DNA from: Macrostomum lignano
Lineage: Eukaryota
Direction of reading: 5' to 3'
Length of the DNA: 64,000 nt
Assembly (NCBI GenBank): GCA_002269645.1
Contig: NIVC01000424.1
Coordinates: 124,001 to 188,000 of the forward strand
Position numbers and translations under genes: made by a program. This document shows positions 15,579-45,304 of this stretch, piece by piece. The notes beneath the pieces were generated by a model. The model did no database searches. It was not told the DNA's origin and was given only the letters and a program-made list of their open reading frames with translations. The stretch's first letter is position 1. Every line of letters begins with the position of its first letter.

Positions 15579-16289
15579 AGCAGTAAAGGCAGACTTGCTC
15601 AACTCTTAAACCAATTCACTCACCGCTTGACAGACGGCAGACAAACTGGAAGCCACTTGCAGTTCTCCGAAGCAAAACAAGTCGATTAGCGATTCGCAGA
15701 GACAATCGGGAGATTTTTGTTGCTGCTAGCAGGATTTCGGAGGCGGAGCGGGGCTCTTAAAAAATCCCCAGAAGGGGGATGAGGAAGGAAAAGGAGGGGA
15801 GGCGGGGATCTCCCACCGGATTGGGGGAGAATGGCGGTGAGGAGGCTATCCGGGATTGGGCGCCAACCGGGGGCGGAGCGCAGAAGGGTGAGGAATTGAC
15901 TTAGAAGACGTTTTTAGGGGAGCAATTCCCGCGACCCCAATAATGGAGTGGCATTTTCAAGAAGGGTTTGAGGAAATTTGTTTTCCAGCTAATGGGGAGG
16001 CTGGTGATCGGAAGCTGCGACTGCTGCTTGCTCATTGGAGGAACTGCAGGGATCAGGGATTATAGAGATCTGGAAATGACACACAGCCAGTATTGCTTTT
16101 CAACTTCTATTCTGTCACCTGTTAGTCACGTCGCGTCTCTGTAACATAGCCAGGCATCGCGGTCTAACTTTTTGCCAGTGTTTTTCTTAGTTTTTTAAGT
16201 TACATATACTTGTACGTACCATCATATTCGTGTTGAAAATTGTAAAAGTAAGAATTCAATTTTTAATAGTCATCATGCCGTCTGGGAAG

Positions 16290-16534
16290 CCATGACTCCC
16301 GTAACAACTCATATGACCCCATGACTCCCACAACCCCATGACTCTCATGAACCCCCAATGACCGGATGACAACCATCCCATGACCCCTATGACCTTCATG
16401 ACCTTCATCACGGCTTGATGAATCTCATGATTCCCATGACCCTCGTGATCCCCATGACCCTCATGATCCCAATGACCCTCATGATCCCCATGACCCTCAT
16501 GATCCCCATGACCCTCATGATCCCCATGACCCTC
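16290..16534. repeat. Degenerate 18-bp repeat CATGATCCCCATGACCCT
   Basis: Direct reading. Confidence 0.85.
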
Positions 16535-19440: not shown

Positions 19441-20381
19441 TTTTTGCCAGCCTATATTGCCCCCTGCCTATGCGTCTGTAACGGTGAAGCGCAGCAGCAA
19501 TAACTTAGAACTCACCCCCTTTGTCTGCAATTGAGCTGATACCTGATTGCAGGTAGACCAGACATACAGGCGTCCAGTCACGGTGCAGGTATTCTCAACA
19601 AGTGATGGAGTTATTTGTGACAGTCGACACCAGGGACAGCCTTGTGCAAGAATCTGGAAGCAGCTTCTTCCTAGTGATTGCCATGCCACAACACGTGCCT
19701 ACGTCAACAAGGCTCCACAAACTCTCCAGACGTCTCGTTCAAAAGGGTCTCCATGGCACACAGATTATGAACCTGATATTAGAAGCTAAGAGCCGCATTC
19801 AGCTATATAGCAGAAGTTTCTACAGAGCCTGCAACAAAAGCATTTTTTGTTTTTTTCGCTGCATCTGACAACAGCGCAACTCGGAAAAACTTACATGTAG
19901 CAGAGCAAAAAATCAACATTCGAGACTGGAGCAGCAGCAGAAGTGTCTTGCAGCAGTTTGTCAGCAAGCAGACAATCATGGAGCATGTTTTGAAGACTGC
20001 CTGACATCGGGCAGATTCACTGATGCAGATCTGTTTCACTCTTTATTTTACAGGCACCCCTATACAATATCTGCGTTTTTTCTCACCGTTACGCGCTGTT
20101 TCGCTTTCACAGCCAGTTGAGCAAAGTGAATTGAATTGACTTTGCGAGCAGGAGGGACGCTGTGCAGTGAGCTGCCGGAGGCTTGTGTCAAGTTTTGTTT
20201 TACTGCAGAGTGAAATATTTCTGAGAGAGAGCTGCAGGATTTTACCTGCTTTCGCTGGCGTTGTTCTGCTTGATTGAGTTTTGCTTGCGGCTGCTGCTGC
20301 TTCTAGGAGAAAAGGCTGGGGACAACAGTAAACTTTAAACTGCAAATACGCGGCTGTATTTTAACTCTTCAGAGTTATTTT

Positions 20382-21028: not shown

Positions 21029-21050
21029 AGTCAGTCAGTCAGTCAGTCAG
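20382..21050. repeat. (CTGT)n/(CTAT)n tetranucleotide tract
   Basis: Direct reading. Confidence 0.95.
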
Positions 21051-22189
21051 ATAAGAACCCAGTCAGCGAAAGCTGATCACAATCGAACAATCAGGGAAGT
21101 GAGTGGCACAGCACTGCAGCACAGCCATGATCAGTGAGCTGAACACAAACAGCCCTCGCATCAGTCTGCACACAGCATCTGAAGCATTTGCATAGCAAAA
21201 TTGGCACAATTTAGCCCAGTAAACAGATGGGTAGCTCACCGAATCTCAATTATTGTTGAAGTGTATTTGACTTCAATCTTCCTCAATAGCGGCTCACACC
21301 CCGATCCTCATCATCTCCTCATCCTGAATTCTCAGCTTCACTCCCTGATAGACTTCCCGGGCGCACTCAAGCGAATGTGAAGTGTAGCAAGAGGAAAGTC
21401 AATATAAAAAATTTCTATATACATGTGCGGGACACTTGTGCATTCCATCTTGGACTGGTGGGCTCTTGTCAAGAGCTCAAGTATACAAGGAATACTAAAA
21501 TTCAAACGTCCTTAGCTATAGAGTTCTGGAGTGGAAACTGTTGCAAATAAACTGTGCTAGGAGTAATACGCTTATACGTAGTTGGAGAATTAAGGCGGGA
21601 ATCTTCGGGGGAATTTAGGCATTAATTTTCAGAGGAATTTATTTGAGAATCATTCAGAGAGAATATAGTTTTCAAGCCAGTCAATTATAAATCTCGTTTA
21701 TAAGCCTGATTCACTCCAGAAAGTGGATGATTTGCACAAGCATTGCGTGGCCACTCAGGTTAATCCCCAAAGCCAGCCCGGGGTCACAAGACAATGGTCC
21801 CGGGGAGGAGAGACAAGGTTGAGAAGTGGGACACAGAAAGCGAGTTTGGAGAGGCCACTTAAAAGCAGAGAGGGCCACCTATCCGGCATATAAAACTGGC
21901 TAAGTGCTGGGCCATAAAAATCAGTTTATGGACAACAGAAGCTGCAGGGAGCTCGCAGTGAGAGAAAGCTTTGAGCAGAAAGAAGCAAAAACTTTTTGAG
22001 ATGAGCAAGAGTATAGCAATTTCTGCTCCATAGACTCCGAGTGCAAGGACTCTATTATAGAGACATGGATTGCAGCAATGATTGGCTGAAATTAATTATA
22101 TCTATACATAATTATCGATCACTTCAATCGATATTCAATCCAAACCCATGGATTAACCCAGACATCCAGGCGCTTTGATCGCAAGACAA

Positions 22190-22710
22190 ACATTTAGGTC
22201 TAATCAAATTAAGTTTTTATGAAATTTGTCATTAAATTTAGATCTTACGAATTTTAGGCCTTATGTGAAGCTTAGGTTTCATGAAAATTAGATCCCCTGA
22301 AATTTGGGTCTTTTGGAGTTTGGGTCCTTTGAAATTTAGGTCTTATGAAGCTTAGGTTTCATGAAAATTAGCTCCCCTGAAATTTAGGTCTTTTAGAGTT
22401 TGGGTCCTATGAAATTTAGGTCCTATGGAATTTAGGTCTAATGAAATTTAGGTCTGATAAAATTTAGGTCCTATGTAATTTAGTTCCTTTGAAATTTAGG
22501 TCTACTGAAGCTTAGGTTTCATGAAAATTAGATCCCCTGAAATTTAGGTCTTTTGGAGTTTGGGTCCTATGGAATTTAGGTCTAATGAAATTTAGGTCCT
22601 ATGGAATTTAGGTCCCATGAAATTTGGGTCTACTGAAATTAAGGTCTTTTGAAGTTTATGTCTAATGAAATTTAGATCTTATAGAATTTAGGTCTAATGA
22701 AATTAAGGCA
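22190..22710. repeat. Degenerate ~20-bp repeat with core GAAATTTAGGTC
   Basis: Direct reading. Confidence 0.85.
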
Positions 22711-24788: not shown

Positions 24789-24992
24789 TCAACTATCATA
24801 AATAATATCGTAATGGCCAGGCCGGTACAGCAGGGTGAGCACAGGAACAGACTCGCCGTCATCCGGGAACGTGTGCCGACTGATCCCGGCGCCATCGCGG
24901 TGCATGTACTCAACCGCGATGCAGGTCTCCAGGGTTTGGGTCAGAGCGATTATGTGAATATGATCGGATTCGTGACGCATTGGCTCCACTTC
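24789..24992 (-). CDS. OTUB1: otubain exon 2
   Basis: Acceptor ccccgcag|GAA at 24993/24992; EVEPMRHESDHIHIIAL...LLYRPGHYDIIY with the catalytic His. The spliced product is 271 aa. Confidence 0.95.
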   Translation of the reverse strand, partial: EVEPMRHESDHIHIIALTQTLETCIAVEYMHRDGAGISRHTFPDDGESVPVLTLLYRPGHYDIIYDS

Positions 24993-25137
24993 CTGCGGGG
25001 ATTCGAGTTCGAGTTGGCAGGGTAAGAGACGATGAGCTGCGCTTTGAAGGCGGGCGATAAAATTAGGCGACTGACAATACCACAAAATCATTCATTAGAA
25101 CCGACATTCTTAAGCATCCATTCTTAAAGATTCACAC

Positions 25138-26762
25138 AAAACCGACATTCCTAAAGACCCACCAAAGCCGACATTCTCAAAGACAAATCAAAACCCGACA
25201 TTCTCAAGGATCCTACAAAACCGACATTCTCGAGGATCCATCAAAACCCGACATTCTCGAGGATCCATCAAAACCGACATTCCCAAAATCCCTATCAAAA
25301 CCGACATTCCTAAAATCCCCATCAAAACCGATATTCTCAAAGACCTAACAATACCGACATTCTCAAGGATCCATCAAAACCGACATTCTCGAGGATCCAT
25401 CAAAACCGACATTCTCAAGGATCCATCAAAACCGACATTCCAAGGATCCATCAAAACGCGACATTCTCAAGGATCCATCAAAACCCGACATTCTCAAGGA
25501 TCCATCAAAACCGACATTCTCAAGGATCCATCAAAACCGACATTCCTAAAATCCCCATCAAAACCGACATTCCTAAAATCCCCATCAAAACCGACATTCT
25601 CAAAGACCCAACAATACCGACATTCTCAAGGATCCATCAAAACCGACATTCTCGAGGATCCATCAAAACCGACATTCTCAAGGATCCATCAAAACCGACA
25701 TTCCAAGGATCCATCAAAACGCGACATTCTCAAGGATCCATCAAAACCCGACATTCTCAAGGATCCATCAAAACCGACATTCTCAAGGATCCATCAAAAC
25801 CGACATTCCTAAAATCCCCATCAAAACCGACATTCCTAAAATCCCCATCAAAACCGACATTCTCAAAGACCCAACAATACCGACATTCTCAAGGATCCAT
25901 CAAAACCGACATTCTCGAGGATCCATCAAAACCGACATTCTCAAGGATCCATCAAAACCGACATTCCTAAAATCCCCATCAAAACCGACATTCTCGAAGA
26001 CCCAACAATACCGACATTCTCAAGGATCCTACAAAACCGACATTCTCGAGGATCCATCAAAACCCGACATTCTCGAGGATCCATCAAAACCGACAATCTC
26101 AAAATCTCTATCAAAACCGACATTCCTAAAATCCCCATCAAAACCGACATTCTCAAAGACCCATCAAAACCGACATTCTCAAGGATCCATCAAAACCGAC
26201 ATTCTCAAGGATTCATCAAAACCGACATTCTCAAGGATCCATCAAAACCGACATTCTCAAGGATCCATCAAAACTGGCATTCCCAAAAATCCCCATCAAA
26301 ACCGAAATTGTCAAAAATCCCCATCAAAACCGACATTCTCAAAGACCTAACAATACCGACATTCTCAAGGATCCATCAAAATCGACATTCTCGAAGGATC
26401 CATCAAAACCGACATTCCTAAAATCCCCATCAAAACCGACATTCTCAAAGACCCAACAATACCGACATTCTCAAGGATCCTACAAAACCGACATTCTCGA
26501 GGATCCATCAAAACCCGACATTCTCAAGGATCCATCAAAACCGACATTCCTAAAATCCCCATCAAAACCGACATTCCTAAAATCCCCATCAAAACCGACA
26601 TTCTCAAAGACCCAACAATACCGACATTCTCAAGGATCCATCAAAACCGACATTCTCAAGGATCCATCAAAACCGACATTCTCAAGGATCCTCCAAAACC
26701 GACATTCTCAAGGATCCTTCGAAACCGACATTCCAAGGATCCTTCAAAACCGACATTCTCGA
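25138..26762. repeat. 26-bp minisatellite AAAACCGACATTCTCAAGGATCCATC, ~62 copies (OTUB1 intron)
   Basis: Direct reading; starts about 25 bp from the donor. Confidence 0.95.
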
Positions 26763-26788
26763 CGATCCTCCACCACTAAACCACTAAC

Positions 26789-27400
26789 CGTAGCACAGAA
26801 GTCTTTAATAGTTTGCTCTCCGTCCAGAAAGCTCTGAAAGAAGTCGGCATGTGTCTGCAAATGACCGCTGACTAGTAAGCGCAAGAACACAACAACATAA
26901 TCGCTTTGACCGGGATTGTTAAACACGGACTCCAAATTGGCAGTAGAGCATTCTCGCCTCTCAACAGTCTCAACTAGTTCGGAGAAAGCGTCGTAAAAGT
27001 CGTCAACCGTAACGGATGAATAGCCCAACTCTATAATGGCGTCTTTTCTTTGTCGACAGATTTCTTTAAGTTTGGCAGCAGCTTCTGGCGGCTGTTGAAG
27101 CAGCTGGTCCAGATAAGCGAATCCGAAGCCTCGATAAAAACAGTTGCCATCGCCTCGGGTTCGTCTCAGACGAGGATACCGAGCGCATAGTTGCTCGCAT
27201 TTGGCTAAGAATACGGGGTCGTCTGTGTACTCTTGCTTCAGGTTGCTAGTTGGTATAGCTGGCGTGATGAGGGCCTGAGCCATGGCTATCTCATTCTCAA
27301 TGTCCTGCTGCTGTTTCTGATAGGCCTCGTACAAACTGCCTGGATCTGCTGAGGAATTCTCCTCCGATTGTGGAGGCTTCTGTTCTGCCTGTTCGGACAT
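26789..27400 (-). CDS. OTUB1: otubain (OTU deubiquitinase) exon 1
   Basis: ATG at 27400; RRTRGDGNCFYRGFGF catalytic Asp/Cys motif; DYVVVFLRLL; phase-0 donor ACG|gttagt at 26789/26788; 204 codons. Confidence 0.95.
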
Positions 27401-29039
27401 TACCGCTGAATATAGCTACTGTCAGTAACAAGTTGAGTAAACAATCTTTAATTATGCTCATGCAATATAAAAGTAATTTATTTTGTTTAATAGTTAGTTT
27501 GTAATCTCGATTGCACAAAAAGCAGTAAATTGTTGTTGCCAAACCACTTGAGACGAGGAGAGAGTAAGAGAGAAGAGATCTCAGAAGGCATAAACCTTAA
27601 GAAAGCTTGGATTGCAATTGTGAAGTTTCAAAGGACCCAAAGGTTAGATAGACAGGCTTTGTAGGCTGTCTGTGGCCTGTGGGTTGAAGTTTACTGACCC
27701 CCGACTTAGAGTGCAGTGTTAGGCCAGTTTATTAGTAACTAAATTGATCACAATTGTGACTATGATTATATGAATTCGTGACCTTATTCATCATTGTGAT
27801 TTCCTAGAGCTTGTTTAAAAGGTTGTGAATGAGGGTTTGCTTTTTTTATTTCTTCCACTTAGAATTTGATCTACCACTTCTATCATAGCAAACACAGATA
27901 ATAAAGCATGTACAATGATAGAACTACTATCATAGCAAAATTGCAGCTTTTAAAGTTTTGTAACTTTTGCATTAAGTCTGGGGATATAACTTTCCCAATT
28001 TTTATTACCTTAGAAAACATTTTCTAGCTAGATAAAGCATAAACAATGATAGATTATTTTTGAAAAATACAAGTTTTTCCTTTCATTAAATTTCTACCTT
28101 GGACTATACTGAATTAGGCTCTTAAGCCTAATAACTTTTTGACCCCTATTTGAGTCACTAAAATCTTGTCTTTCATAGCTTAAATCTAAAATATTAAGAA
28201 TTAGAGAATTTAAACCATTAAATTTGAGCTCCTATTGCAGCTAAGGTCTGAACTGCACTGGATGCCCTCCTTTGTCATGCTAAATCATGTCAGTGCTAGA
28301 CCCCAATTGCACTGCCAAGGGCCAATCTGTGCTAGACATTGTAAACAATATGAACCATTGGCTGCAATAGAGACATAAGTTTATTTATTTTTTGAGATTT
28401 TAAATAGCTAAAAAATCACTTTAAAGATTTATTATTTGATTGTTTAAAAGCTAGCACAATCTAAGTGGAAACAAATCCAGGCCATTTGCATATGGAATAT
28501 AAGATATAATATAATAATAGCTTTTATATATAAGAAATCTAATTAATAGTAATATGTTTTTTAATTAATAAATTAATTATTAACTATGTTTTTTACTTGA
28601 TTATATCCTGTTTAAAGCTCCTAATAATGGGATAAATAAAGTCCCACTTCAATGAGACCATGCTGCTAAGCTGCCATTATAATAGCAGGCTATGCAGTCA
28701 TAAGAACTTTTTGCTTGTCTAGACCAGCTGGTTCTAAAAATGCTGAACTTTCCACCTAGACCTAGGGCAGTCACCCAGCAGTCTTGGGACAGCAGAACCA
28801 AGCTGAACATGGTGTACTTCACTGATAGCTATGTTAAATGGCATGGAAGCCTTTCTAATATAGCAATTACAAAATTGTATAGTTGGCCTATTGGCTATAT
28901 CTTTTGCATATTCTTAATCTTATGTAGCAAAGCCATTAAACAGCTACTATAGAACAATTAGCTTTAGTCTACTAGATATTTTTTAAGTAAATCTTAAGTA
29001 GATTTTATAAATTCTACAGCATTCTATTAAACAGGATAC

Positions 29040-29812
29040 AAAAATGCAAGCCCAGCTCTATACAATGACTAGTGCCACAAAGGAGCTGGCTGGTTTCACA
29101 AGAACCCATGGGTTGTTGCATATCTTCCTGTCCAGATGCACAGCTTAATGGCTTTTTTGGCTGGTTCTATTTGTAACTACCTTGATTGGCTTGATTGGCT
29201 TGATTGGCTGCACCATCCACTTGACCAAGTTGTTGCAGAAGTTCACCAAGCACTCTATTGAGTTGCAGCTGAAGTTGAAAAGCAAATGAGCCCAGTCTAG
29301 ATTATAATAGGTTGCAGGTTATAATCTGCAACTTCAAGCCTGCTTCTATATCCTTGACTCTATATGATGATTATCATGATTACTTGAAAACTATTGAGGA
29401 AACTTTGACAACTGGTTCAAATAGGACACCAAAAAGTGCCTGCAAGAATTGGATAAAAGCTACTAACCCAAATCAACTTAAGAAGATATGCAAGCTCCTA
29501 GATGTGATATAGGTGTTGGATAACACCATAGATATCTCCCACCTCAACAAGACCATGCTGCTAAGCTGCCACTATAGTAGCAAGCTATGCAGTCACAAGA
29601 ACTTGTTGCTTGTCTAAACTAGCCAGTTCTAAAACTGCTACATATTCACCTGGACCCAGGACAGTTGTCCAATGGTCCTAGGGACAAGACAGCCAAGAGC
29701 TAGACATGGTGCTTTTTACTAGTGGCTACTTTGAATGGCACAGAAGCCTTTCTGATATAGCAATTAGTGGGCCCATTAGCTAAATCTCTTACATATTTTT
29801 ATGTAACAAAGC
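29040..29812 (+). pseudogene. Decayed coding-like sequence of unknown family within the CpG-free tract
   Basis: Protein-like stretches (DQVVAEVHQALY*VAAEVEKQM; DYHDYLKTIEETL...KKICKLLDVI*VLDN) broken by TGA and TAG stops that could derive from CGA and CAG. Confidence 0.3.
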
Positions 29813-30019
29813 AACCAACTAGGTAGCTGCTATATAACCTATATTTATTTTTGTGCAATAGGAATGCTATATAATATTGTGACTTTCCAAACTGCATCCT
29901 TAAATTGGACCTTGGATGCAATTTTATATCTTAGTACTACCAAAGAACCCAGTGCAAAAAAATTTGCCTCAGTCTATTGTATGGCGCATTTTCTTTTACA
30001 AGTCAAAAAGCTACCTAAT

Positions 30020-33000
30020 GAATCAGACTAGGTTTGTAGACATGGTCTCAAGCATATTTCTAAAGACTTTAAGACAAGATAACTGTATTGATTCTGGCTA
30101 AAAATAAGCTTGCACCTAGCTAGTACAAATCAACTAGTACCTATAGCTATTCCATTTGCCACTGACAAGGAGAAAGGTTATGAAACTGATTCTTCAGTTC
30201 CAAATATCAACGAGGAATCAAGAGACAAAGATCTAGGTACCATTGCTATAGAACAAGGTCTAAACCAAGAGCATATGGCTATGTTGCCCTGTCATAGCAC
30301 CTATACATGCTATGCACTTGATCACTTTTTACTTTGATTGACTTATAGACAATTCTTGACCCTATTGGAATAAATTCTTAGTGTTTAGCATAACACAACA
30401 CACTTTGTATACTATTTGTATACTGCAATCTAGGGGGCAAATGGGTAAATAGCAAGAGTAACTATGAATAAGTTACTTTATCAGCTAATATTTAATAGTT
30501 TAATCCTATACAATTTGTCTGATTTTTATTAAACAAATGATAGTAGGCCTATTGACAATGATCAACTTGCCTAAGACCTCTTATAAGTTAAGAGTCTTAA
30601 GTTTTTTAATTTAGCTAGGCCTAATAAGCAGCTTATTATTTTCACTTAGTAGAAATTTACAAACGTAAAAAATATTAAACTTTGCATATCTTCTCACCTT
30701 GGCCTGCAGACTAACTATTATTAAAATGTTTTTTGAACTAAAATTGCTATGAAAAATTGGTAGCTTTTCAAGACTATGAAGATGATAAAAGCCTTCTGCA
30801 ATTTGGTGTAGGGCCTAGCTAGAAGGATAACATAAGTTATGTTTGTTACAGGTCCTCCAATATGCTATTACTTTTATGTGCCACTTTTCCAACATATGCT
30901 ACTTTTTGGAGTGCTGCCCCTTAGCCCATCTGGTATATCATCTTTTAACCCTTTTCAAGGCTTTTGGTATACCATGCTACATTAGAAAGGTGCACTTTTT
31001 GAAGTATACTAGATAGCCACCTATAAAATGTCAATTCTTCCTAAAAGGATTCTTGAGATAAACAAAAACTATTTTACTTAATTATGTAGGCCTACTCAAT
31101 ATAGGCCTAATACTCTGGCATAGGCCTTAGTCATTTCCAATAGTTTAAACAGTTTTTTCTATGATTGTTATTAATGTCTATGCATGAATATTGGCCCTAT
31201 GCCTTTTGTTCCATAAAAAGGACATAATATATTTTATATATACATTAGAGCTCAACCTAGAGCTTTAATGCATTAGGGGGCCTATTGTTTTTCTGTCTTT
31301 GTTATATATTATATGGCTTAAGCTTTGTTCAACTTTTATTCTGTAATTTTTTTGTAAGTCTATAACATTATATTCTTTCTTTTGCAAAGCTTCTTTTTTA
31401 ATTTCATTCTACTTTTCCCTTAAGACCCTACCTATAGTATTGCTACATGCTCAAGATTTCTATTGTAACTATCAAATACAAATGATAACCTTGTATTGCT
31501 TATCACTATAATCATATCAAAAAGCGAAGGCCTAGGCCTATTAAAAGCAACTTGGTTAGGCCCTAGCCATGTTGTCTAAAATGATTTAAAGATGCTTTTT
31601 CTAAATAGAATTTGACAAATATTTGATAATAATAATTATCATCTATAATTTGATTGAATATATATAGATGCTATCTTCAAAGCGTTAAGGTATAAAAAGT
31701 AGGCCTAGGCCTAGTAAGCTAGCTAAGCCTAAGCCACAGCTATTGCATGGCACATCTACAGACTGCACTGCTGCACACAGCTGTTTCTGTTTAGTCCAAG
31801 AACTGGAGGCGGGGGTCGACACACATCCTTAATTACCCCAGCTAATGCTGGTAGCTACCCATTTGATAGCTGTGTCGGTGTCGTCGGTAAACTGAAGCAA
31901 TGCAACTCAGACAGAGTTAGGCCCTACCTAGGTCCTAAGTGTCTTGCTCAAGGACACAAATTGTTCCAGTGGGATCGGGAATTGAACCCCACTTTGAATC
32001 ATAAAGGCATCATCATTTAATTCTCAAATAGAGGCTTATTATTAATAAATGAACCCTGCAAAGCTCATCAGTCATCAGTCATCACTCATCAGCAAACGAG
32101 ACGAGCCATTGACTAAGTCATTGAAGTGCCCGCAGGCCGCAGTTGGGTGGATAGTTAGATGATGATCTTGGATTTCTAACAGCAAATTTTATAGATAGTC
32201 ATCAATAGTCAATAGGCATGCCAAACCCCCCACGATGTGAATCTATCCAACTCAGGACTAGGCACTTAGCACAATTAGCCCGTTAGCCGCGGCTGTTTAA
32301 AACGTCGTCGGTTGAAAAACCGTTTAAATATGGTTCGCAAAAATGACAAAATCGCAAGCGAAACTCCTTCAAACACCTCAAAAAGCAATGCTTACTTAAT
32401 TTATTTAAATAAAGAGTAAGTGAGTACTTTTAGCTTACATTGCATAATAAAATTTTTGAAGTAGTTTATTAGACTAGTGCACCTTTTGGCGCAAATTTGA
32501 ACTGAAATTTTGATTAACACAGGTATTAATTTATATGGAATCTGGATGGATTGATCGTCACAACATCCTTAGACAGCTGATTTTTTTGTTTTTTAACAAC
32601 TATTTCGCAAATTTATTACAAAACCCTACCCGAGGCTATATAGTCGAGGCGATTAATTTTGAGTTGACAGCTGACAGCATGTACACTGTACACATATACA
32701 CGTCACACAGCTAGCTGCTGCAGCTGCAGCAATACTAGCCCACCTACTCATCAGCAAAAGTGCACTTGCTGTAGAAAAAATTCACTGAAGACAGAGTAAA
32801 ATAACTGTGATAACGGACTAGCTATATTAGTGCCTTTTAATTAAATCTCGTCGAACTGTCAAAGCCAATAACATGTACATGCACATGTACTGATGTACTT
32901 ACATGTACATCAGTGCATGTAAGCTGGAACCAAAAGCTTTAATGACACTCAACCACCAGGCTGCGTTAGACACCGATCTGCATGTGTCGAACTTCAACAA

Positions 33001-33025
33001 ATTTCCGATTCTGGTCCGGCTTACT
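30020..33025. repeat. 3,006-bp direct duplication, copy 1
   Basis: gaatcagactagg...ctggtccggcttact recurs at a constant offset of 5479 at both ends. Spot checks were identical, including the duplicated 75-aa ORF at 30110 and 35589. Confidence 0.95.
31840..32010 (-). mobile_element. tRNA-derived SINE remnant (CORE/MIR-like central domain)
   Basis: Minus strand reads gggttcaattcccg (B box), then tgtgtccttgagcaagacacttag and aaatgggtagc, segments typical of conserved-domain SINEs. Confidence 0.55.
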
Positions 33026-35498
33026 TACTTACTTACTACTGACGGGGGGCGCAGGCGCCGCGAATAGGCCGCGAGGCCCCTATCGCAACCCCAAGGTAAA
33101 AGAGCACAAGGATTAGCCTTGGGGGTGCGCCCAGTCCCCGCCAGTAGTCGGCAGGTCCGCAGTGGAGGCATCGGCGACCCTCATCCGGCCGGAGTCCCGG
33201 ACGAAGGCGCGGAGGTCTCGGATATTGTCCGCGGTGGTCAGCTCGTCCATCCGCTGGGGGTGGCCGAGGTATTTGTGCCGCGCCTTGTTGAAGTAAGGGC
33301 AGAAGGTGACGTGATGCTCCGCGGTCTCCTCTCCTATGCCACAGAAGGGACAGGTGGGAGGGCAACCGGTTTGCAACGATATATGTCTCTGGAAGAATCC
33401 GTGGCCGGTTAGGACCATGCACATCTCCCTGAGGTCGGTTCTGTTAAGCGAAATCAGATAATCAGAGACTTTCCTGTTCAGGTTAGGCATGGCAGAGCGG
33501 CTCTGCCTGTACTCGGTGCAGCTGTTCCAGTGGAGCTGGTGCTGCTGATGGAGCCACCTGTTGATATGGCGGGTGACTTGCGACCTGGGGGTGGGTAGCC
33601 TCATCAGACGGTGGTTGCCGTCTGGGTTGCTGCCCTCCTTGGCGAGAGAGTCCGCGAGCTCGTTGCCCAGGATGTTGCTGTGACCAGGTGTCCAGATAAT
33701 TCTAATCCTGTTAAGGACTGAGAGAGATTGCACACTGCGGTGGCATTGAGATACTGTAGCAGCGGAGATATTCTCAGTGGTTAAGGCCTTAATAGCAGCT
33801 TGGCTATCAGTGTAGAAATTAATGTCAAAATTATTAATGTTCGCCTGAAACAGTTGCTGGGCACACTGCTCAATGGCGCAAATTTCAGCTTGGAAAACTG
33901 AGGTGTTCTCACCGAGGTGCAGACTTTCCTGGAGAAGCATCTTACCCTCGTGGAAAATGGCAATACCCGCTCCAGCGCGGCCGTTGAACAGCGAGCCGTC
34001 GGTGAAGCAGTGAATGCCCTGGCTGCGCCGGTTCACACCGACATCCAGCGGAATGTTGTCTCGGCCAGGGATGGCGGTCTTGAAGCCCCTCCTGATGTTG
34101 AGGGCGGGAGGTCGACTATCCACATTGCCCAGGTCCATGTGGATGTTGTTAAGGTCGCGGCGGACAAAGTCCATATGCGGGATTAATGTTTTCATTGGCA
34201 TAAAGCCAGAGGGCGCGTTATTTAACGTTTTATCTCTGATAAGCCGGGAGGCAGACTTCATAGCCTCCGCCCTAATAAATAGGTGAAGCGGAGGTAGGTT
34301 AAGGATAGTGTTCAGCCCCTCGTAAGGGGTGGACGGGTACGCACCTGTGATGGCACGGCAAATGCTGCCCTGAAGCTGGTACAGCCGCTGACGGGCGGCC
34401 TTCTGCTCCAGCACGCTAGTCCAGATGAGACTCGCGTATGTGATACTGGGCCGGATGATGCCGGTATAAATCCAACGGACCGTTCTAGGCGAGAGGCCCC
34501 AAGTCGGCCCGATGGCTCTGCGCAGCTGGGCAAAGCAGCGTTTTGCCCGACCGATGACGTTATCAAGGTGCTTCGTCCAGCGCAGGTCATGCGTTAGCGT
34601 CACACCGAGGTATTTGACCTCCTTCTTGAAGGGGATGTTTCTGCCATAGACAGTGAGGTTTTTCATCTCCCATTTACGGCGCTTGGTGAAAACGACAGCG
34701 ACAGTCTTAGTGACGCTGATTTTTAGGCCATGCTGTGTAGCCCAGTCGGCCGCCTTGTCGGCGAATTGCTGCATCAGGTTGCGCAGAGTGGCGGGGTCGT
34801 GTCCGCTGACGACCGCGGCAACGTCATCGGCGTAGCCCGCCCTGGTGATACTGCTGGGAATGTCAGCGGTTAGAAGTTCGTCCATGACGAGATTCCAGAG
34901 AAGTGGAGTTAGCACGCCACCTTGCGGGCCGCCTTTCATCACCGCCCGGGTGAGGGTAACGCCCATAAGTGTGGATGTCACAAACCTTTTGCGGATCATA
35001 AAATAAATCCAGCGAACAATGCTGTGTCTTACATTCCTGCGGGAAAGAGAATTTCTGAAGGAGCGGAAGAGGACATTGTCAAATGCTCCTTCGAAGTCAA
35101 CGAACAACCCGCAAGCGAGTTGTTTGCTAAGGATGGCACTCTCAATTTTGGAGGTAATGGCGTGGAGAGCATGCTCAGTCGTCCTCCCAGGCTGGAAGGC
35201 GTACTGGTACTTACTGACAGGGTCGGAGCGCAGGTCGCACTCTCGAAGCCTCCACAGGATGAGCCTCTCCATCAGCTTAACACAAAAGGAAGTGAGGCTG
35301 ATGGGCCGGAAGGATTTCACGTTGGTGTAGTCACCCTTAGCAGGTTTCGGGATGAACACGACTCTGGACATTCTCCAGATTGTGGGAATGTAACCTGTGG
35401 TATAACAGTCAACAAGCAATTTAGAGAAAGAATCAGCAAAGTTTTGCAGCTTTAGCGCCTCCTGCAGGATACAGGGGGCGATATTGTCAGGGCCAGAC
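33026..35498 (-). mobile_element. 5'-truncated non-LTR retrotransposon with RT, RNase H and Zn knuckle (I/R1/LOA-like group), ending in a (TAAG)n tail
   Basis: Begins at SSGPDNI (the GPDG motif at the start of RT); contains [31 protein letters not shown], RNase H FTDGS...FQAEICAI...TDSQAA...WTPGH...GNELAD and CPFCG...[10 protein letters not shown]. Short 3' UTR, then gtagtaagtaagtaagtaag. Much more GC- and CpG-rich than its flanks. Confidence 0.95.
33113..35419 (-). CDS. ORF2 remnant of the retrotransposon (RT-RNase H-CCHC), uninterrupted
   Basis: 768-aa ORF in the track. The frame stays open upstream to the 5' junction at about 35500. No APE endonuclease domain is present. Confidence 0.9.
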
Positions 35499-38400
35499 GA
35501 ATCAGACTAGGTTTGTAGACATGGTCTCAAGCATATTTCTAAAGACTTTAAGACAAGATAACTGTATTGATTCTGGCTAAAAATAAGCTTGCACCTAGCT
35601 AGTACAAATCAACTAGTACCTATAGCTATTCCATTTGCCACTGACAAGGAGAAAGGTTATGAAACTGATTCTTCAGTTCCAAATATCAACGAGGAATCAA
35701 GAGACAAAGATCTAGGTACCATTGCTATAGAACAAGGTCTAAACCAAGAGCATATGGCTATGTTGCCCTGTCATAGCACCTATACATGCTATGCACTTGA
35801 TCACTTTTTACTTTGATTGACTTATAGACAATTCTTGACCCTATTGGAATAAATTCTTAGTGTTTAGCATAACACAACACACTTTGTATACTATTTGTAT
35901 ACTGCAATCTAGGGGGCAAATGGGTAAATAGCAAGAGTAACTATGAATAAGTTACTTTATCAGCTAATATTTAATAGTTTAATCCTATACAATTTGTCTG
36001 ATTTTTATTAAACAAATGATAGTAGGCCTATTGACAATGATCAACTTGCCTAAGACCTCTTATAAGTTAAGAGTCTTAAGTTTTTTAATTTAGCTAGGCC
36101 TAATAAGCAGCTTATTATTTTCACTTAGTAGAAATTTACAAACGTAAAAAATATTAAACTTTGCATATCTTCTCACCTTGGCCTGCAGACTAACTATTAT
36201 TAAAATGTTTTTTGAACTAAAATTGCTATGAAAAATTGGTAGCTTTTCAAGACTATGAAGATGATAAAAGCCTTCTGCAATTTGGTGTAGGGCCTAGCTA
36301 GAAGGATAACATAAGTTATGTTTGTTACAGGTCCTCCAATATGCTATTACTTTTATGTGCCACTTTTCCAACATATGCTACTTTTTGGAGTGCTGCCCCT
36401 TAGCCCATCTGGTATATCATCTTTTAACCCTTTTCAAGGCTTTTGGTATACCATGCTACATTAGAAAGGTGCACTTTTTGAAGTATACTAGATAGCCACC
36501 TATAAAATGTCAATTCTTCCTAAAAGGATTCTTGAGATAAACAAAAACTATTTTACTTAATTATGTAGGCCTACTCAATATAGGCCTAATACTCTGGCAT
36601 AGGCCTTAGTCATTTCCAATAGTTTAAACAGTTTTTTCTATGATTGTTATTAATGTCTATGCATGAATATTGGCCCTATGCCTTTTGTTCCATAAAAAGG
36701 ACATAATATATTTTATATATACATTAGAGCTCAACCTAGAGCTTTAATGCATTAGGGGGCCTATTGTTTTTCTGTCTTTGTTATATATTATATGGCTTAA
36801 GCTTTGTTCAACTTTTATTCTGTAATTTTTTTGTAAGTCTATAACATTATATTCTTTCTTTTGCAAAGCTTCTTTTTTAATTTCATTCTACTTTTCCCTT
36901 AAGACCCTACCTATAGTATTGCTACATGCTCAAGATTTCTATTGTAACTATCAAATACAAATGATAACCTTGTATTGCTTATCACTATAATCATATCAAA
37001 AAGCGAAGGCCTAGGCCTATTAAAAGCAACTTGGTTAGGCCCTAGCCATGTTGTCTAAAATGATTTAAAGATGCTTTTTCTAAATAGAATTTGACAAATA
37101 TTTGATAATAATAATTATCATCTATAATTTGATTGAATATATATAGATGCTATCTTCAAAGCGTTAAGGTATAAAAAGTAGGCCTAGGCCTAGTAAGCTA
37201 GCTAAGCCTAAGCCACAGCTATTGCATGGCACATCTACAGACTGCACTGCTGCACACAGCTGTTTCTGTTTAGTCCAAGAACTGGAGGCGGGGGTCGACA
37301 CACATCCTTAATTACCCCAGCTAATGCTGGTAGCTACCCATTTGATAGCTGTGTCGGTGTCGTCGGTAAACTGAAGCAATGCAACTCAGACAGAGTTAGG
37401 CCCTACCTAGGTCCTAAGTGTCTTGCTCAAGGACACAAATTGTTCCAGTGGGATCGGGAATTGAACCCCACTTTGAATCATAAAGGCATCATCATTTAAT
37501 TCTCAAATAGAGGCTTATTATTAATAAATGAACCCTGCAAAGCTCATCAGTCATCAGTCATCACTCATCAGCAAACGAGACGAGCCATTGACTAAGTCAT
37601 TGAAGTGCCCGCAGGCCGCAGTTGGGTGGATAGTTAGATGATGATCTTGGATTTCTAACAGCAAATTTTATAGATAGTCATCAATAGTCAATAGGCATGC
37701 CAAACCCCCCACGATGTGAATCTATCCAACTCAGGACTAGGCACTTAGCACAATTAGCCCGTTAGCCGCGGCTGTTTAAAACGTCGTCGGTTGAAAAACC
37801 GTTTAAATATGGTTCGCAAAAATGACAAAATCGCAAGCGAAACTCCTTCAAACACCTCAAAAAGCAATGCTTACTTAATTTATTTAAATAAAGAGTAAGT
37901 GAGTACTTTTAGCTTACATTGCATAATAAAATTTTTGAAGTAGTTTATTAGACTAGTGCACCTTTTGGCGCAAATTTGAACTGAAATTTTGATTAACACA
38001 GGTATTAATTTATATGGAATCTGGATGGATTGATCGTCACAACATCCTTAGACAGCTGATTTTTTTGTTTTTTAACAACTATTTCGCAAATTTATTACAA
38101 AACCCTACCCGAGGCTATATAGTCGAGGCGATTAATTTTGAGTTGACAGCTGACAGCATGTACACTGTACACATATACACGTCACACAGCTAGCTGCTGC
38201 AGCTGCAGCAATACTAGCCCACCTACTCATCAGCAAAAGTGCACTTGCTGTAGAAAAAATTCACTGAAGACAGAGTAAAATAACTGTGATAACGGACTAG
38301 CTATATTAGTGCCTTTTAATTAAATCTCGTCGAACTGTCAAAGCCAATAACATGTACATGCACATGTACTGATGTACTTACATGTACATCAGTGCATGTA

Positions 38401-38504
38401 AGCTGGAACCAAAAGCTTTAATGACACTCAACCACCAGGCTGCGTTAGACACCGATCTGCATGTGTCGAACTTCAACAAATTTCCGATTCTGGTCCGGCT
38501 TACT
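35499..38504. repeat. 3,006-bp direct duplication, copy 2
   Basis: Same sequence as 30020-33025; abuts the 5' truncation point of the LINE. Confidence 0.95.
37319..37489 (-). mobile_element. Second copy of the SINE remnant, inside the duplication
   Basis: Identical sequence at offset +5479. Confidence 0.55.
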
Positions 38505-39836
38505 ACCTGTGTACTATTATATCTTTATACTCTGTGTAGACAAGATACGAGTTGACATGTACTATATGTACGTGCAGTTAAGAGCATTGTAAACTCTTTA
38601 TTCAGGTCGTGACACAAACGCACACGAAATTTTACAAATTAATTCTTTACAAGTAAATTTGTATATTTTGCCATTGTCATTTTACCTGTGAAATCGGTTT
38701 TTAATAAAATTTATTATCGAATACGTGTAAACTTATTACAGCAATTTAGCGGTAAGCAGACAGAAAACCACAATGTTTTCTCGTTGAAAAAAAGCTGGCG
38801 AATGCAGTTAAACTACAACTTTGATGTTCACTGTATAGTGTATGTTTTTGACAGCAGGTCAACGACAAGTTCAAAGTGTACTTACATGAAAGTGGATATT
38901 AGCTGCTAAAAACACTGTTTAAAAGAATTCCACGAAGCTGGACAGCACATACACTGCACATACTTATACAGCAGTGCAAAAGCAAAGTTAATTGTTAAAA
39001 GCATAGATGAAAAATCGATATCTATCATGCATGTACATTTACAGTAAAATCTGAATGTGAATTTTATTTACACCTTGCAAATTTGCAAACTGCAGCTGTT
39101 TTGCACAAAGATTAGAAAGTATACACGTTACATGTACACGGGGAGTATAGGTTTAAGTCATACAATGCACTCAAGTGTACGGTATTTGTTCGAGGTATGA
39201 CCAGAAAGCCACAATAGGGTTTAATATTTACTTGTGTGTACGCGACAAAATTTTACAGCTGAAGAAACAAATCAAATATTTAACTCAATTTAAATTATAA
39301 GAATTATAAGTTAAAAACCATAATCAACAAAATTATGAAATCAAAATGCTGCAAGTGTAAATTAAATCCATCACAGAGCTACGCCAGAGATCAAGGATCA
39401 GTCCATTGGTTAACAAAAGTTGACCTTAGTTAATTTGATTTAAATGATTGATTTAATATGAGCCACATATAACATAGACGTTAACTTCAACACGCCTTTT
39501 TAATTGTTTGAATTCGTTTCGATACATATCGGCGCAGTCTAGTCTGAACTTTTAGAATCAACTATAAATGCTTCGAAACATCTCGGTAGAATCTATATTT
39601 GAATTTTATAAGTTGAATTATTCAGTTCTTTAATATTACTAATTTTAAGAAGCCAATTTACATTTTTTCGATACATATCGGTAGAATCCTCACCAGAAAA
39701 CTGTAATTGAAGTTTATATCAATCTTTATCCTATCGGTGCATTGCATTCTGGATATTAAGAGTTCAATTTATAACTGTTTCCATACATATCGGCAGAAAA
39801 ACGATATCGCACACGCACATACACAGTGTGTATTAA

Positions 39837-40043
39837 TCAGTCTTGCCAAGGAACAAAGCAGGCTTGCCGTGTGCAAATTTCTGCTCGACAGATCGGGCAG
39901 GTCTCCAGCCGGTTGGCGCAGCCGCCGCAAGCCATCATGTGACCGCAGGGCAGGAATACAATTGAAACGCTGGCATCTGAGCAGATTTGGCATAGGCGCG
40001 ACTGCTCTAGTCGACGAATTCGTTCGAGTAGACTGGCGCGAGT
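39837..40043 (-). CDS. MYLIP: MYLIP exon 5, C-terminal IAP-type RING finger
   Basis: Acceptor atttccag|ACT at 40044/40043; CQICSDASVSIVFLPCGHMMACGGCANRLETCPICR; TGA at 39839-39837. The five exons sum to 1581 nt (526 aa plus stop). Confidence 0.92.
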   Translation of the reverse strand, partial: TRASLLERIRRLEQSRLCQICSDASVSIVFLPCGHMMACGGCANRLETCPICRAEICTRQACFVPWQD

Positions 40044-40128
40044 CTGGAAATATGCATTTTTAGTTCATTCTTTTAATCAGTTTAGTTTTAGCGAAACACA
40101 GAAGTTAATATAGAGATTGAAAAATTAC

Positions 40129-40298
40129 CTCGTCGTTCCCTTTTTCTGAAATTCTGTCCACATCTTCCACTTTCTTAGCCTCGGCACCGGAAATGCCTGG
40201 AGCGGCGGAAGCGGCAGACAGGCACTTGTGCAACTGCCGCCTCGCATTGTCGTGCACCTCCTTCGCTGTGCGTCGCACGTCGAACACAAAATTGCGAA
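40129..40298 (-). CDS. MYLIP: MYLIP exon 4
   Basis: Acceptor ttttcag|TT at 40299/40298; FVFDVRRTAKEVHDNARRQL matches IDOL [20 protein letters not shown]. Donor GAG|gtaatt at 40129/40128. Confidence 0.9.
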
Positions 40299-40856
40299 CT
40301 GAAAATGTTGGATATATTTTTAGATTATTGTGTAAATAAAAAAGCATATAAGCTACTTTTTCTACTGTTAGTAGACTGTTGACGAAAAAACCTACTTACT
40401 AGCCATAGCGTAAGCAGCGAAGGTTAGGAAAACACAAGTCAAAAAAGCTTTGAGAACTATTTTCTGATTAAGTAAAATTTATCACACGGTCCAAAGAGCA
40501 GATTAAAACAGAATAATAAACTGGACAGAGTGACACATAATTTACGACTCCCAGCAGCTGTGACAACTTTTTACTTTAACACAAGTTCAAAGCCTGCAGC
40601 AACAGTTTAGAGGCTCATATAGATTCACATCTAGCCTATTGTCAGAGTCAAGAAGATACACACAATGAGAGACACACCCCTTTTGGAAGGGCCAGCTATC
40701 AGCTCTACTATTTTGTTGGTATAGCCTTTGCTACCATAACCTCTAAAAATTCTGCAAAGAATAATAAATGCAGCTCAAAGAAGGCTACGAAACATTTTCA
40801 CCCAGGTAAGCTTACTGACGTCAGTAGCTCAGCTGGCTAATAAGTAAACCCCTGGA

Positions 40857-43466: not shown

Positions 43467-45304
43467 TGTCGATTGTTGCTTGAACTTGCGACAATTGCCT
43501 CCTTGGCTTGCTTCAGAACTTGGAATGAGGAATTCCTCCCAAGTGTTTCGTTGCTTTATATGTTTCACTGTACAGTTTAGTCAGTTCTCAGCCGCGTGGT
43601 CTCTTGGCCTCTTGAAGGGAGAGAGGGGCCTTGAATATTTGTGACCCTTCCTGTCTATTTTGGGCGTTAACTTCATACACACGCTTGTAAGTGCACATTG
43701 AAGTGTACATTACCCAAAGCTTTTCCTTGCTTCTCGCGCTCGGGCAGGGGGTTTTCCCAAGGTCATTTAGGCACGCGCGTGTCTCGTGTGGTGGCGTAAA
43801 GAGCATCAAAATCACTCAATCAGCGAGTGACTGCATGATTGCATGCTCCCCCCACTGTTTGAATCATTAGGATTCCTATGTAGCGGAACCAAAGTAATTT
43901 TCTCACCTGTTATCCACCACGTGCTTGTTTTTTTGAAATCGCACCAAGCAAACTCACTGATTCTATTCCGATGGTAAATTTCCATTCGTAAATAGGAAAT
44001 CGTGGAGCGAGCGAACTAGAAAAAAACTAGAAAGTGTAGCGAAGCCGCCAAGCAAAGGGCGAAAAGAAAAGTATGTAATTCGTAAAAATAACCTTATTAC
44101 TTTCGGGAAATTACTGAGGTTAATTTTGTGTACTGACTTTTGGCAAATAATTAAGTTCTTACAGTTGCAACTCGCTAACTTGAGTATTTTCTGGCTTTTT
44201 TGTAAGACTCGTGAGTAAGAGCACTTTTTTCTTAAAATAGCAATTACGAAGCTAGCAAGCAATTCCAGTACAAATTTAGCTCGTATAATACAGGAAACTT
44301 TGGCTTCACTTTTATTTTAGTCGAAATTCGAAAACATCAACAAAATAGAAATTCTACGAATTTGAAATGTTTGTGCCTTGAAATACTGTACTGTATTGTA
44401 TGTACACCGACGGGAATCTAGATTAAGATTAATTTCTGCTACCAAAATAGATAACTGGTCTTAATAACACTACTAACAGTAGCAATCAAATGATTTTTCA
44501 AGCGCATATACAGTCACTTTTCCGATTAAATTGCTTTGCCTTGGAGAGAATAACCGAGAGGAAAGTGTTCTTACAAGCAATCTATAAACCCTGGCAGGTT
44601 TTTCTCAGCCAAATACAAAAATTGGCTTTTCCTGCTGAATGCAAATATTGAGCAAGCGAAAAAATATCGCTGCAACTTGTATAAGCGAGAGGGAGGGTAA
44701 ATATTGAGCAAACACCCCCAGTTTGCGGGGTGGCAAAAAGTCATCAAAAATTTCTTTGGCCAATTTCAACCAAAAGATGAAAAAAAAGAAATTCTGATCG
44801 CGGAAGGAAGAAACTGCAGAAAGCTGGAGAAATCGAAATGTGCCACTTCCACAGCTGCAGCAATATAATCATCACTTGTTCAAATTCTAACAAAGTTAAT
44901 CGTCATTTCTGCCTGAGAATTATGCATGCATTTTGGGCAGAGGCAGAGAGAAATGAGAAAAATTAAAGTCAAACACTGGCTCAGCAACAATGATTCAAGG
45001 CTTTGTTAGCTGTTCCGTTTATTGGCAAACATACAGACAGCCAAATACTGCAGTCACCGTGTATTCAGTGACTGTACATGCATTTCTGAATGTTGTATTT
45101 ATACAAAATGCAAGAATTTTAATCCCACTAAACAGGGTCGATCTGCCACACCTTGAGCTGCAGCACCTTTAACAATTGTTGCTTCAGGTAAATACTGAGC
45201 TCACACGGTGAGGCCAAGACCAATCATAGCACACATGGTCCGCGTAACATAATCAAGCGCCCTTGAATGTCCCCATAATTCCAAGTCACAGAGCAAAATA
45301 TTTC

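Follow-up and report, generated by a model that had tools for sequence, protein, structure and literature searches.

A sharply bounded, nearly CpG-free intergenic tract in Macrostomum lignano points to probable localised germline cytosine methylation

How does a block of about 4 kb come to be almost free of CpG dinucleotides when the DNA around it keeps a normal complement? This question is raised by a locus of Macrostomum lignano, examined here in a stretch of 64,000 nucleotides of contig NIVC01000424.1 in assembly GCA_002269645.1 (hereafter the window). The element in question is a non-coding, AT-rich tract lying upstream of an otubain gene. A first-pass annotation of the same DNA had placed the tract in an animal genome, correctly, and had read it as the product of methylation-like or repeat-targeted hypermutation. 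The analysis below suggests that its CpGs were once present and were probably lost through localised methylation in the germline.

27781..31800, no strand: CpG-free, AT-rich, non-coding intergenic tract (NIVC01000424.1:144389-148408, reverse strand)

Direct counting revealed 5 CpG in the 4,020 bp of the tract (GC 0.338), at positions 29985, 30211, 30664, 31525 and 31683 only, which corresponds to an observed/expected ratio (o/e) of 0.044. At the window mean of 0.66 about 75 would be expected (Poisson probability of at most 5, 6e-26). The gap between 27777 and 29985 (2,208 bp, with zero CpG in 27778-29984) is the longest of the whole window, and the remaining long gaps are satellites with a CpG-less unit. 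At the right edge, CpG reappears at 31810, 31817, 31876, 31882 and 31885. The exact counts agree with the first-pass annotation in its claims of near-zero CpG within 27781-31800, of an abrupt return at 31810 and of plentiful CpG in other AT-rich parts of the window: the depletion is local and sharply bounded, and two AT-rich reference regions have CpG o/e values of 0.99 (38505-40800) and 0.78 (43900-45300). For a comparison in 500-bp windows, tandem repeats (35.6% of the window), a long interspersed nuclear element (LINE) and a duplicate copy, both described below, were masked out first. The 14 masked windows within the tract did not exceed a CpG o/e of 0.17 (median 0), whereas the 65 outside it had values of at least 0.37 (median 0.86); the 18 AT-rich windows outside the tract (GC < 0.40) all reached at least 0.49. 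Exons, an intron satellite, a segment resembling a short interspersed nuclear element (SINE) and the LINE around the tract range from 0.7 to 1.3. The depletion is specific to CpG, with a GpC o/e of 1.78 in the tract as opposed to 0.04 for CpG, and TpA is raised, with an o/e of 1.02 compared with 0.74 window-wide (0.74-0.85 elsewhere).

The best evidence that the missing CpGs once existed and decayed comes from an old internal repeat of 228 bp within the tract.

28642..28869, plus strand: internal repeat copy 1 (partner 29537-29766, 78.5% identical)
29537..29766, plus strand: internal repeat copy 2 (partner 28642-28869)

Neither copy contains a CpG. At 7 of 39 CA/TG dinucleotides one copy has CA where its partner has TG; all remaining double-transition classes together give 7 of 205 (odds ratio 6.2, P=0.0023). 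Among three copies of the locus, introduced below, CA/TG discordance recurs twice in the tract, once as a CA/TA/TG series, and never in the flank. Such discordances are expected where an ancestral CpG was deaminated on opposite strands in two copies. Taken as ghost CpGs, they point to a tract that formerly had a roughly normal CpG density, which fell in place as CpG underwent transition to TpG/CpA.

A sister protein (g1/g2) led to two more loci, L002 (NIVC01000106.1) and L003 (NIVC01000423.1), which BLAST aligns with the window at 92-94% identity along the entire upstream region (95-98% in ungapped columns). The same stretch is CpG-free in both, where it lies at about 93555-97741 of NIVC01000106.1 and about 111330-115585 of NIVC01000423.1. 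The aligned tract contains 5 CpG in the window, 4 in L002 and 2 in L003, and none of the 8 sites involved is common to all three copies. Since the tract is CpG-free in all three, the depletion is older than the duplication of the locus.

Substitutions were polarised by majority rule in a three-way alignment of the window, L002 and L003, in which the direction of changes on the root branch is ambiguous, there being only three copies. The alignments cover window positions 26770-33025 and 38505-38618, together with controls at 15579-16378, 19441-20380 and 21049-22191. The tract accumulated 202 changes over 3,752 sites (0.054 per site), the same rate as the CpG-normal upstream flank (67 of 1,250, 0.054) and four times that of the promoter and exon 1. 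Mutation is AT-biased in tract and flank alike, with C>T and G>A numbering 38 each in the tract. According to the preceding base, C>T rates in the tract are 0.067 (A), 0.083 (C), 0.040 (G) and 0.060 (T), with no TpC bias. The slightly lower rate at GpC (0.040 vs 0.069, P=0.05) is a weak effect that could contribute to the high GpC content. A similarly weak excess of C>T at CpA (0.079 vs 0.045, P=0.018 uncorrected) is the sole hint of targeting outside CpG.

The behaviour of CpG itself is different. Three CpGs were reconstructed as ancestral, and each was lost in one copy, every time by transition (3 of 6 C/G positions). This loss exceeds both non-CpG C>T changes in the tract (73 of 1255, P=0.004) and transitions at CpG positions in the flank and downstream controls (2 of 248, P=7e-5), where CpG transitions are not elevated (2 of 248 vs 24 of 1556 for non-CpG). 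Local block similarities and tree shapes indicate that at least two of the three losses are true. These few events would put the rate of CpG loss in the tract at about 10-30 times that of other cytosines, as is typical of methylated vertebrate CpG. The first-pass annotation had expected spectra against paralogs to be dominated by C>T and G>A; the CpG losses are indeed all transitions, whereas the non-CpG spectrum and the overall rate are ordinary.

Gains of CpG are also scarce in the tract, 4 being observed compared with 16.7 expected (P=2e-4). Within the tract, T>C changes number 2 of 483 at TpG vs 52 of 2008 in other contexts; the controls give 1 of 623 vs 18 of 1656, and the odds ratio is 0.15 in each case. 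A T followed by G mutates to C some 6-7 times less often than other Ts, whether CpG is nearly absent, as in the tract, or normal, as in the controls, which looks like a general mutational context bias of this genome. The shortfall of gains was considered as proof of ongoing depletion and rejected, since TpG-to-CpG change is equally rare where CpG is normal.

We consider localised germline methylation the probable cause of CpG loss in the tract. Under this explanation, the block would be neutrally evolving non-coding DNA between a FERM/RING (MYLIP-like) gene and the otubain gene, with an originally normal CpG content. It would have carried constitutive, long-lasting germline 5-methylcytosine (5mC), laid down by DNMT1/DNMT3. 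Methylated CpGs would deaminate to TpG/CpA some 10-30 times faster than other cytosines, while the flanking genes, satellites, SINE-like segment and LINE would be unmethylated and keep theirs. TpG/CpA would decay onward to TpA under the general AT-biased mutation, giving rise to the AT-richness and the normal-to-high TpA, and the very low steady state (o/e 0.04) would be aided by the low TpG-to-CpG rate common to tract and controls. Reviews state that DNMT1 and DNMT3 have both been kept in M. lignano and that its 5mC is low (PMC11292947, PMC9246332); adult methylation has been reported as low (PMC10658182), and according to reviews the methylation pattern is undescribed for any free-living flatworm (PMC11292947, PMC9246332, PMC10658182). 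Both the role of 5mC as the cause and the persistence of methylation today are presumed from the sequence. The methylation-type decay proposed in the first-pass annotation fits the ghost-CpG discordances and the CpG-specific transitions. Its further argument, that TpA enrichment implies mutation in CpA context, was right about the enrichment and not about its meaning: TpA rises because CpG decays to TpG/CpA and then to TpA under AT-biased mutation, a two-step path that suffices without CpA targeting, and the CpA hint is weak.

Several observations weigh against this explanation. Invertebrate methylation usually targets gene bodies and transposable elements; the tract is not a gene body and cannot be recognised as a transposable element, and the neighbouring gene bodies and the young LINE are without CpG decay. 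TpG and CpA are not in excess (o/e 1.20 and 1.07, compared with 1.07-1.28 in neighbours); such levels fit with an old decay in which TpA later took over, but give no positive evidence for it. CpG decay does not account for the high GpC or for the abundance of AGCT, GGCC, CTAG and TAGGCCTA words. The non-CpG dinucleotide composition changes at the same boundaries as CpG, in a comparison that is partly circular (the models were trained on the same regions); this switch hints that the block may have a separate sequence origin. Ongoing decay is supported by few sites (3-5), with root-branch polarity ambiguous for three copies, and one of the three lost-CpG sites lies within a segment tandemly duplicated in L002 and L003. 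Finally, the shortfall of CpG gains is not specific to the tract.

The search for a recognisable identity of the tract gave the following results. No open reading frame (ORF) in it exceeds 75 amino acids, and a Pfam scan of the six-frame translation of 27701-31900 returned no match at E<=0.1. The sole tract ORF searched for homologues, one of 70 amino acids spanning the internal repeat, had none, and a degenerate 33-mer from that repeat had no match in metagenome contigs. No tRNA or Rfam match was found over the whole window, nor at a relaxed threshold in 31600-32400. Terminal inverted or direct repeats, as in long-terminal-repeat elements, were sought at the tract ends without success, and the search for further copies of the tract within the window returned none besides the duplicate of 30020-31800. 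A recognisable transposon was rejected on these grounds, namely the lack of terminal repeats, of a Pfam domain and of an extra copy in the window.

The alternative that survives best is purely historic: the tract would be a relic of an old transposon or other methylated sequence that lost its CpGs long ago in an ancestor whose methylation pattern differed; it would no longer be methylated, and CpG would return only slowly from TpG. All three copies were already CpG-free when they split, the T of TpG mutates to C about 6-fold less often than other Ts even in CpG-normal controls, and all 8 present CpG sites could be recent gains. The shift in non-CpG composition at the tract boundaries and the low methylation reported in adults (PMC10658182) agree with such a history. 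It is less easily reconciled with the at least two CpGs, common to non-sister copies, that local tree shapes show to have been lost by transition in a short branch, with the contrast between 3 of 6 CpG positions lost in the tract and 2 of 248 in controls, with the CA/TG and CA/TA/TG series among copies only 3-5% diverged, or with the failure to find transposon structure or domains in the tract. We regard a historic relic as possible, albeit rather unlikely.

A second alternative dispenses with CpG-specific mutation. The tract would descend from CpG-less short repeats of the AGGCCT/AGCT/CTAG type, since decayed, or selection upstream of the gene would have acted against CpG. Word counts lend it some substance: CTAG occurs 34 times (12.5 expected), AGCT 44 times (12.5 expected) and GGCC 18 times (3.3 expected), TGCA is likewise enriched, and TAGGCCTA occurs 7 times. 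The richness in CTAG and TAGGCCTA-type words noted in the first-pass annotation is thereby borne out. The enriched 4-mers follow from dinucleotide composition, except GGCC and CTAG, which lie above the dinucleotide prediction. The distinct non-CpG dinucleotide profile also fits a separate ancestry, as do the other long CpG gaps of the window, all of them satellites with a CpG-less unit. Yet Tandem Repeats Finder at score 30 detected no tandem structure in the tract beyond arrays of 15-29 bp, and a decayed satellite was rejected as the origin for that reason. The ghost-CpG signature indicates that CpGs existed and decayed, and a tract evolving at the neutral flank rate, four times that of promoter and exon, is unlikely to be under sequence-level selection. 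Ancestry or selection is accordingly an improbable explanation.

Hypermutation aimed at a repeat, whether like fungal repeat-induced point mutation (RIP) or through an APOBEC/AID-like deaminase, is more improbable still. The TpA/ApT ratio of 1.10 is above the fungal RIP threshold of 0.89, and the mild C>T excess at CpA points in the same direction. However, (CpA+TpG)/(ApC+GpT) is 1.45 in the tract, compared with 1.38 for the window and a value below 1.03 needed for RIP, so that CpA/TpG is not depleted; the sole true duplicate, of 3,006 bp, is 100% identical and unmutated, and no repeat copies of the tract are known. For a deaminase, C>T lacks a strong TpC/CpC preference (0.060 and 0.083 vs 0.067 at ApC) and the overall rate equals that of the flank; APOBEC/AID-type editing was rejected for want of both a TpC/CpC focus and an excess mutation load. 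Three parts of the first-pass reading are unsupported: a RIP-like process; general hypermutation, given a tract rate (0.054) equal to the flank and an ordinary non-CpG spectrum; and repeat targeting, given that neither a further copy in the window nor a transposon domain nor terminal repeats were found for the tract.

An origin in foreign or contaminant DNA, which the first-pass annotation had also raised, or in mis-assembly might be suggested by the sharply distinct composition and by the lack of homologues for one tract ORF and the internal-repeat pattern, but has a negligible probability, as the tract lies between the same flanks on both sides on three contigs at 92-94% identity, and contamination or a chimeric join is therefore excluded.

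The surroundings of the tract comprise two genes and a SINE-like segment.

24789..27400, minus strand: otubain (OTUB1-like) gene Mlig001358g4 (Peptidase_C65 6e-46; 100% identical to PAA83273.1)
31805..32030, minus strand: CpG-retaining SINE-like segment adjoining the right edge of the tract (tRNA T-arm-like and SINE-core-like motifs; identity unverified, extent approximate)

The otubain ATG is at 27400, which places the tract 0.4-4.4 kb upstream of it. The exon ORF at 26744-27400 (minus strand) matches Peptidase_C65 at 6e-46, is 100% identical to BOX15_Mlig001358g4 and has a CpG o/e of about 1. Further upstream, gene calls in a paralog indicate a FERM/RING (MYLIP-like) gene ending near 39.8 kb. 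The segment at 31805-32030 (minus strand) carries a T-arm-like motif, GGGGTTCAATTCCCGATCCC, and a 21-mer, GTGTCCTTGAGCAAGACACTT, at 31939-31959. The 21-mer was found in 60 marine metagenome contigs, with homology extending over only about 24 bp, so the ends of the element are not definable; from its motifs, the segment may be a SINE whose core is widely shared. The tandem repeats of the window fall into 29 distinct arrays with units mostly of 11-34 bp. One array lies within an otubain intron (25137-26768), and several give long spurious ORFs.

Part of the tract takes part in a large perfect duplication around the LINE.

30020..33025, plus strand: left copy of a perfect direct duplication (3,006 bp) flanking the LINE
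33026..35498, minus strand: 5'-truncated non-LTR retrotransposon, the LINE (ORF 33113-35419; (TAAG)n tail abutting 33026; RVT_1 1e-30, RNase_H 7e-13)
35499..38504, plus strand: right copy of the direct duplication (3,006 bp), 100% identical to the left copy
35499..37279, no strand: second CpG-poor block, exact duplicate of 30020-31800, in which the CpG positions recur at an offset of 5,479

The second block, at 35.5-37.3 kb, repeats the distal part of the tract and is no independent case; the first-pass annotation had the main tract right and overlooked this duplicate. The LINE has a CpG o/e of 0.84, and its full-length relatives in M. lignano encode 1,204 amino acids including an endonuclease domain. 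When the LINE and one duplicate are deleted in silico, the window becomes colinear with the LINE-less paralog L003. The perfect 3,006-bp repeat is either a target-site duplication hundreds of times the usual length or an assembly artefact. An independent, longer copy of the same LINE family (about 3.96 kb, 99.6% identical) occupies L002 395-4371, inserted about 267 bp from the site used in the window and with a normal duplication of 9-13 bp. The two LINE copies differ at 9 positions, none of which is a CpG>TpG change. AGTA(A/G)G is present at both target sites and matches the (TAAG)n tail, which suggests that microhomology between tail and target may prime insertion of the LINE.

The three locus copies are mosaic, with blocks 100% identical between two copies beside blocks of about 95% (for example 19441-20380 vs L002 15363-16302), and which two copies are closest varies with position, pointing to gene conversion among them or to a partly collapsed assembly. 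A unit of about 300 bp in the tract (29889-30194) is single in the window and tandemly duplicated in L002 (6914-7518) and L003 (6959-7555), where the units are 92% identical and joined at GCAGTTT microhomology. The duplication boundary at 30020 falls in the middle of this unit; a link between the two was considered and rejected as probably a coincidence.

The mechanism favoured here, localised germline methylation, is a known one, and the tract is a further example of its known footprint, in an island that is unusually sharp and extreme. What it offers is a testable prediction, made from sequence alone, of a site of germline methylation: an intergenic island that spares the neighbouring gene bodies and a young LINE. 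Were the tract a single leftover, it would record past methylation in the ordinary way. Should islands of this kind prove common, segmentation by CpG o/e would map the germline methylome of the species, and one would have to ask how methylation is recruited to DNA that belongs to no gene and no recognisable transposon. A bolder generalisation, which we think unlikely, is that dense and long-lived germline methylation resides on AT-rich intergenic islands, neither genes nor transposons, in an otherwise unmethylated genome. Such 'inverse CpG islands' may be targets kept since before the duplication of the locus and independent of transcription. If true, this would be a methylome architecture undescribed in any animal, and it would explain the low bulk 5mC despite the retained DNMT1 and DNMT3.

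Among known systems, transposon-targeted methylation in some invertebrates, including silencing linked to PIWI-interacting RNA, resembles the tract in having a non-genic target beside retroelements, with targeting that would predate the locus duplication. It differs in that the tract has no transposon domain, terminal repeat or detectable extra copy, and in that CpG decay is absent from the young LINE copies beside it. Relics of fungal RIP are likewise AT-rich, TpA-rich, non-coding, sharp-edged and almost CpG-free; however, RIP strikes CpA in duplicated DNA and so depletes CpA/TpG, whereas these are normal in the tract (index 1.45) and its duplicate is unmutated. Globally methylated vertebrate genomes with CpG islands share with the tract a CpG hypermutability of about 10-fold or more, decay to TpG/CpA and sharp boundaries, which in vertebrates are found at promoters. 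The polarity is inverted, depletion being confined to a small island in a locus that otherwise looks largely unmethylated, and the depletion is about 5 times deeper than in the bulk vertebrate genome, where CpG o/e is about 0.2. The mosaic methylation of invertebrates such as Ciona, sea urchin, oyster and annelids likewise produces long, sharply bounded CpG-depleted domains beside CpG-normal DNA (o/e near 1), with CpG-specific depletion as the footprint of germline 5mC in species with DNMT1 and DNMT3. The usual targets in these methylomes are broadly expressed gene bodies with o/e values typically of 0.3-0.6, whereas the M. lignano tract is intergenic and non-coding, falls to 0.04 and leaves both adjacent gene bodies spared.

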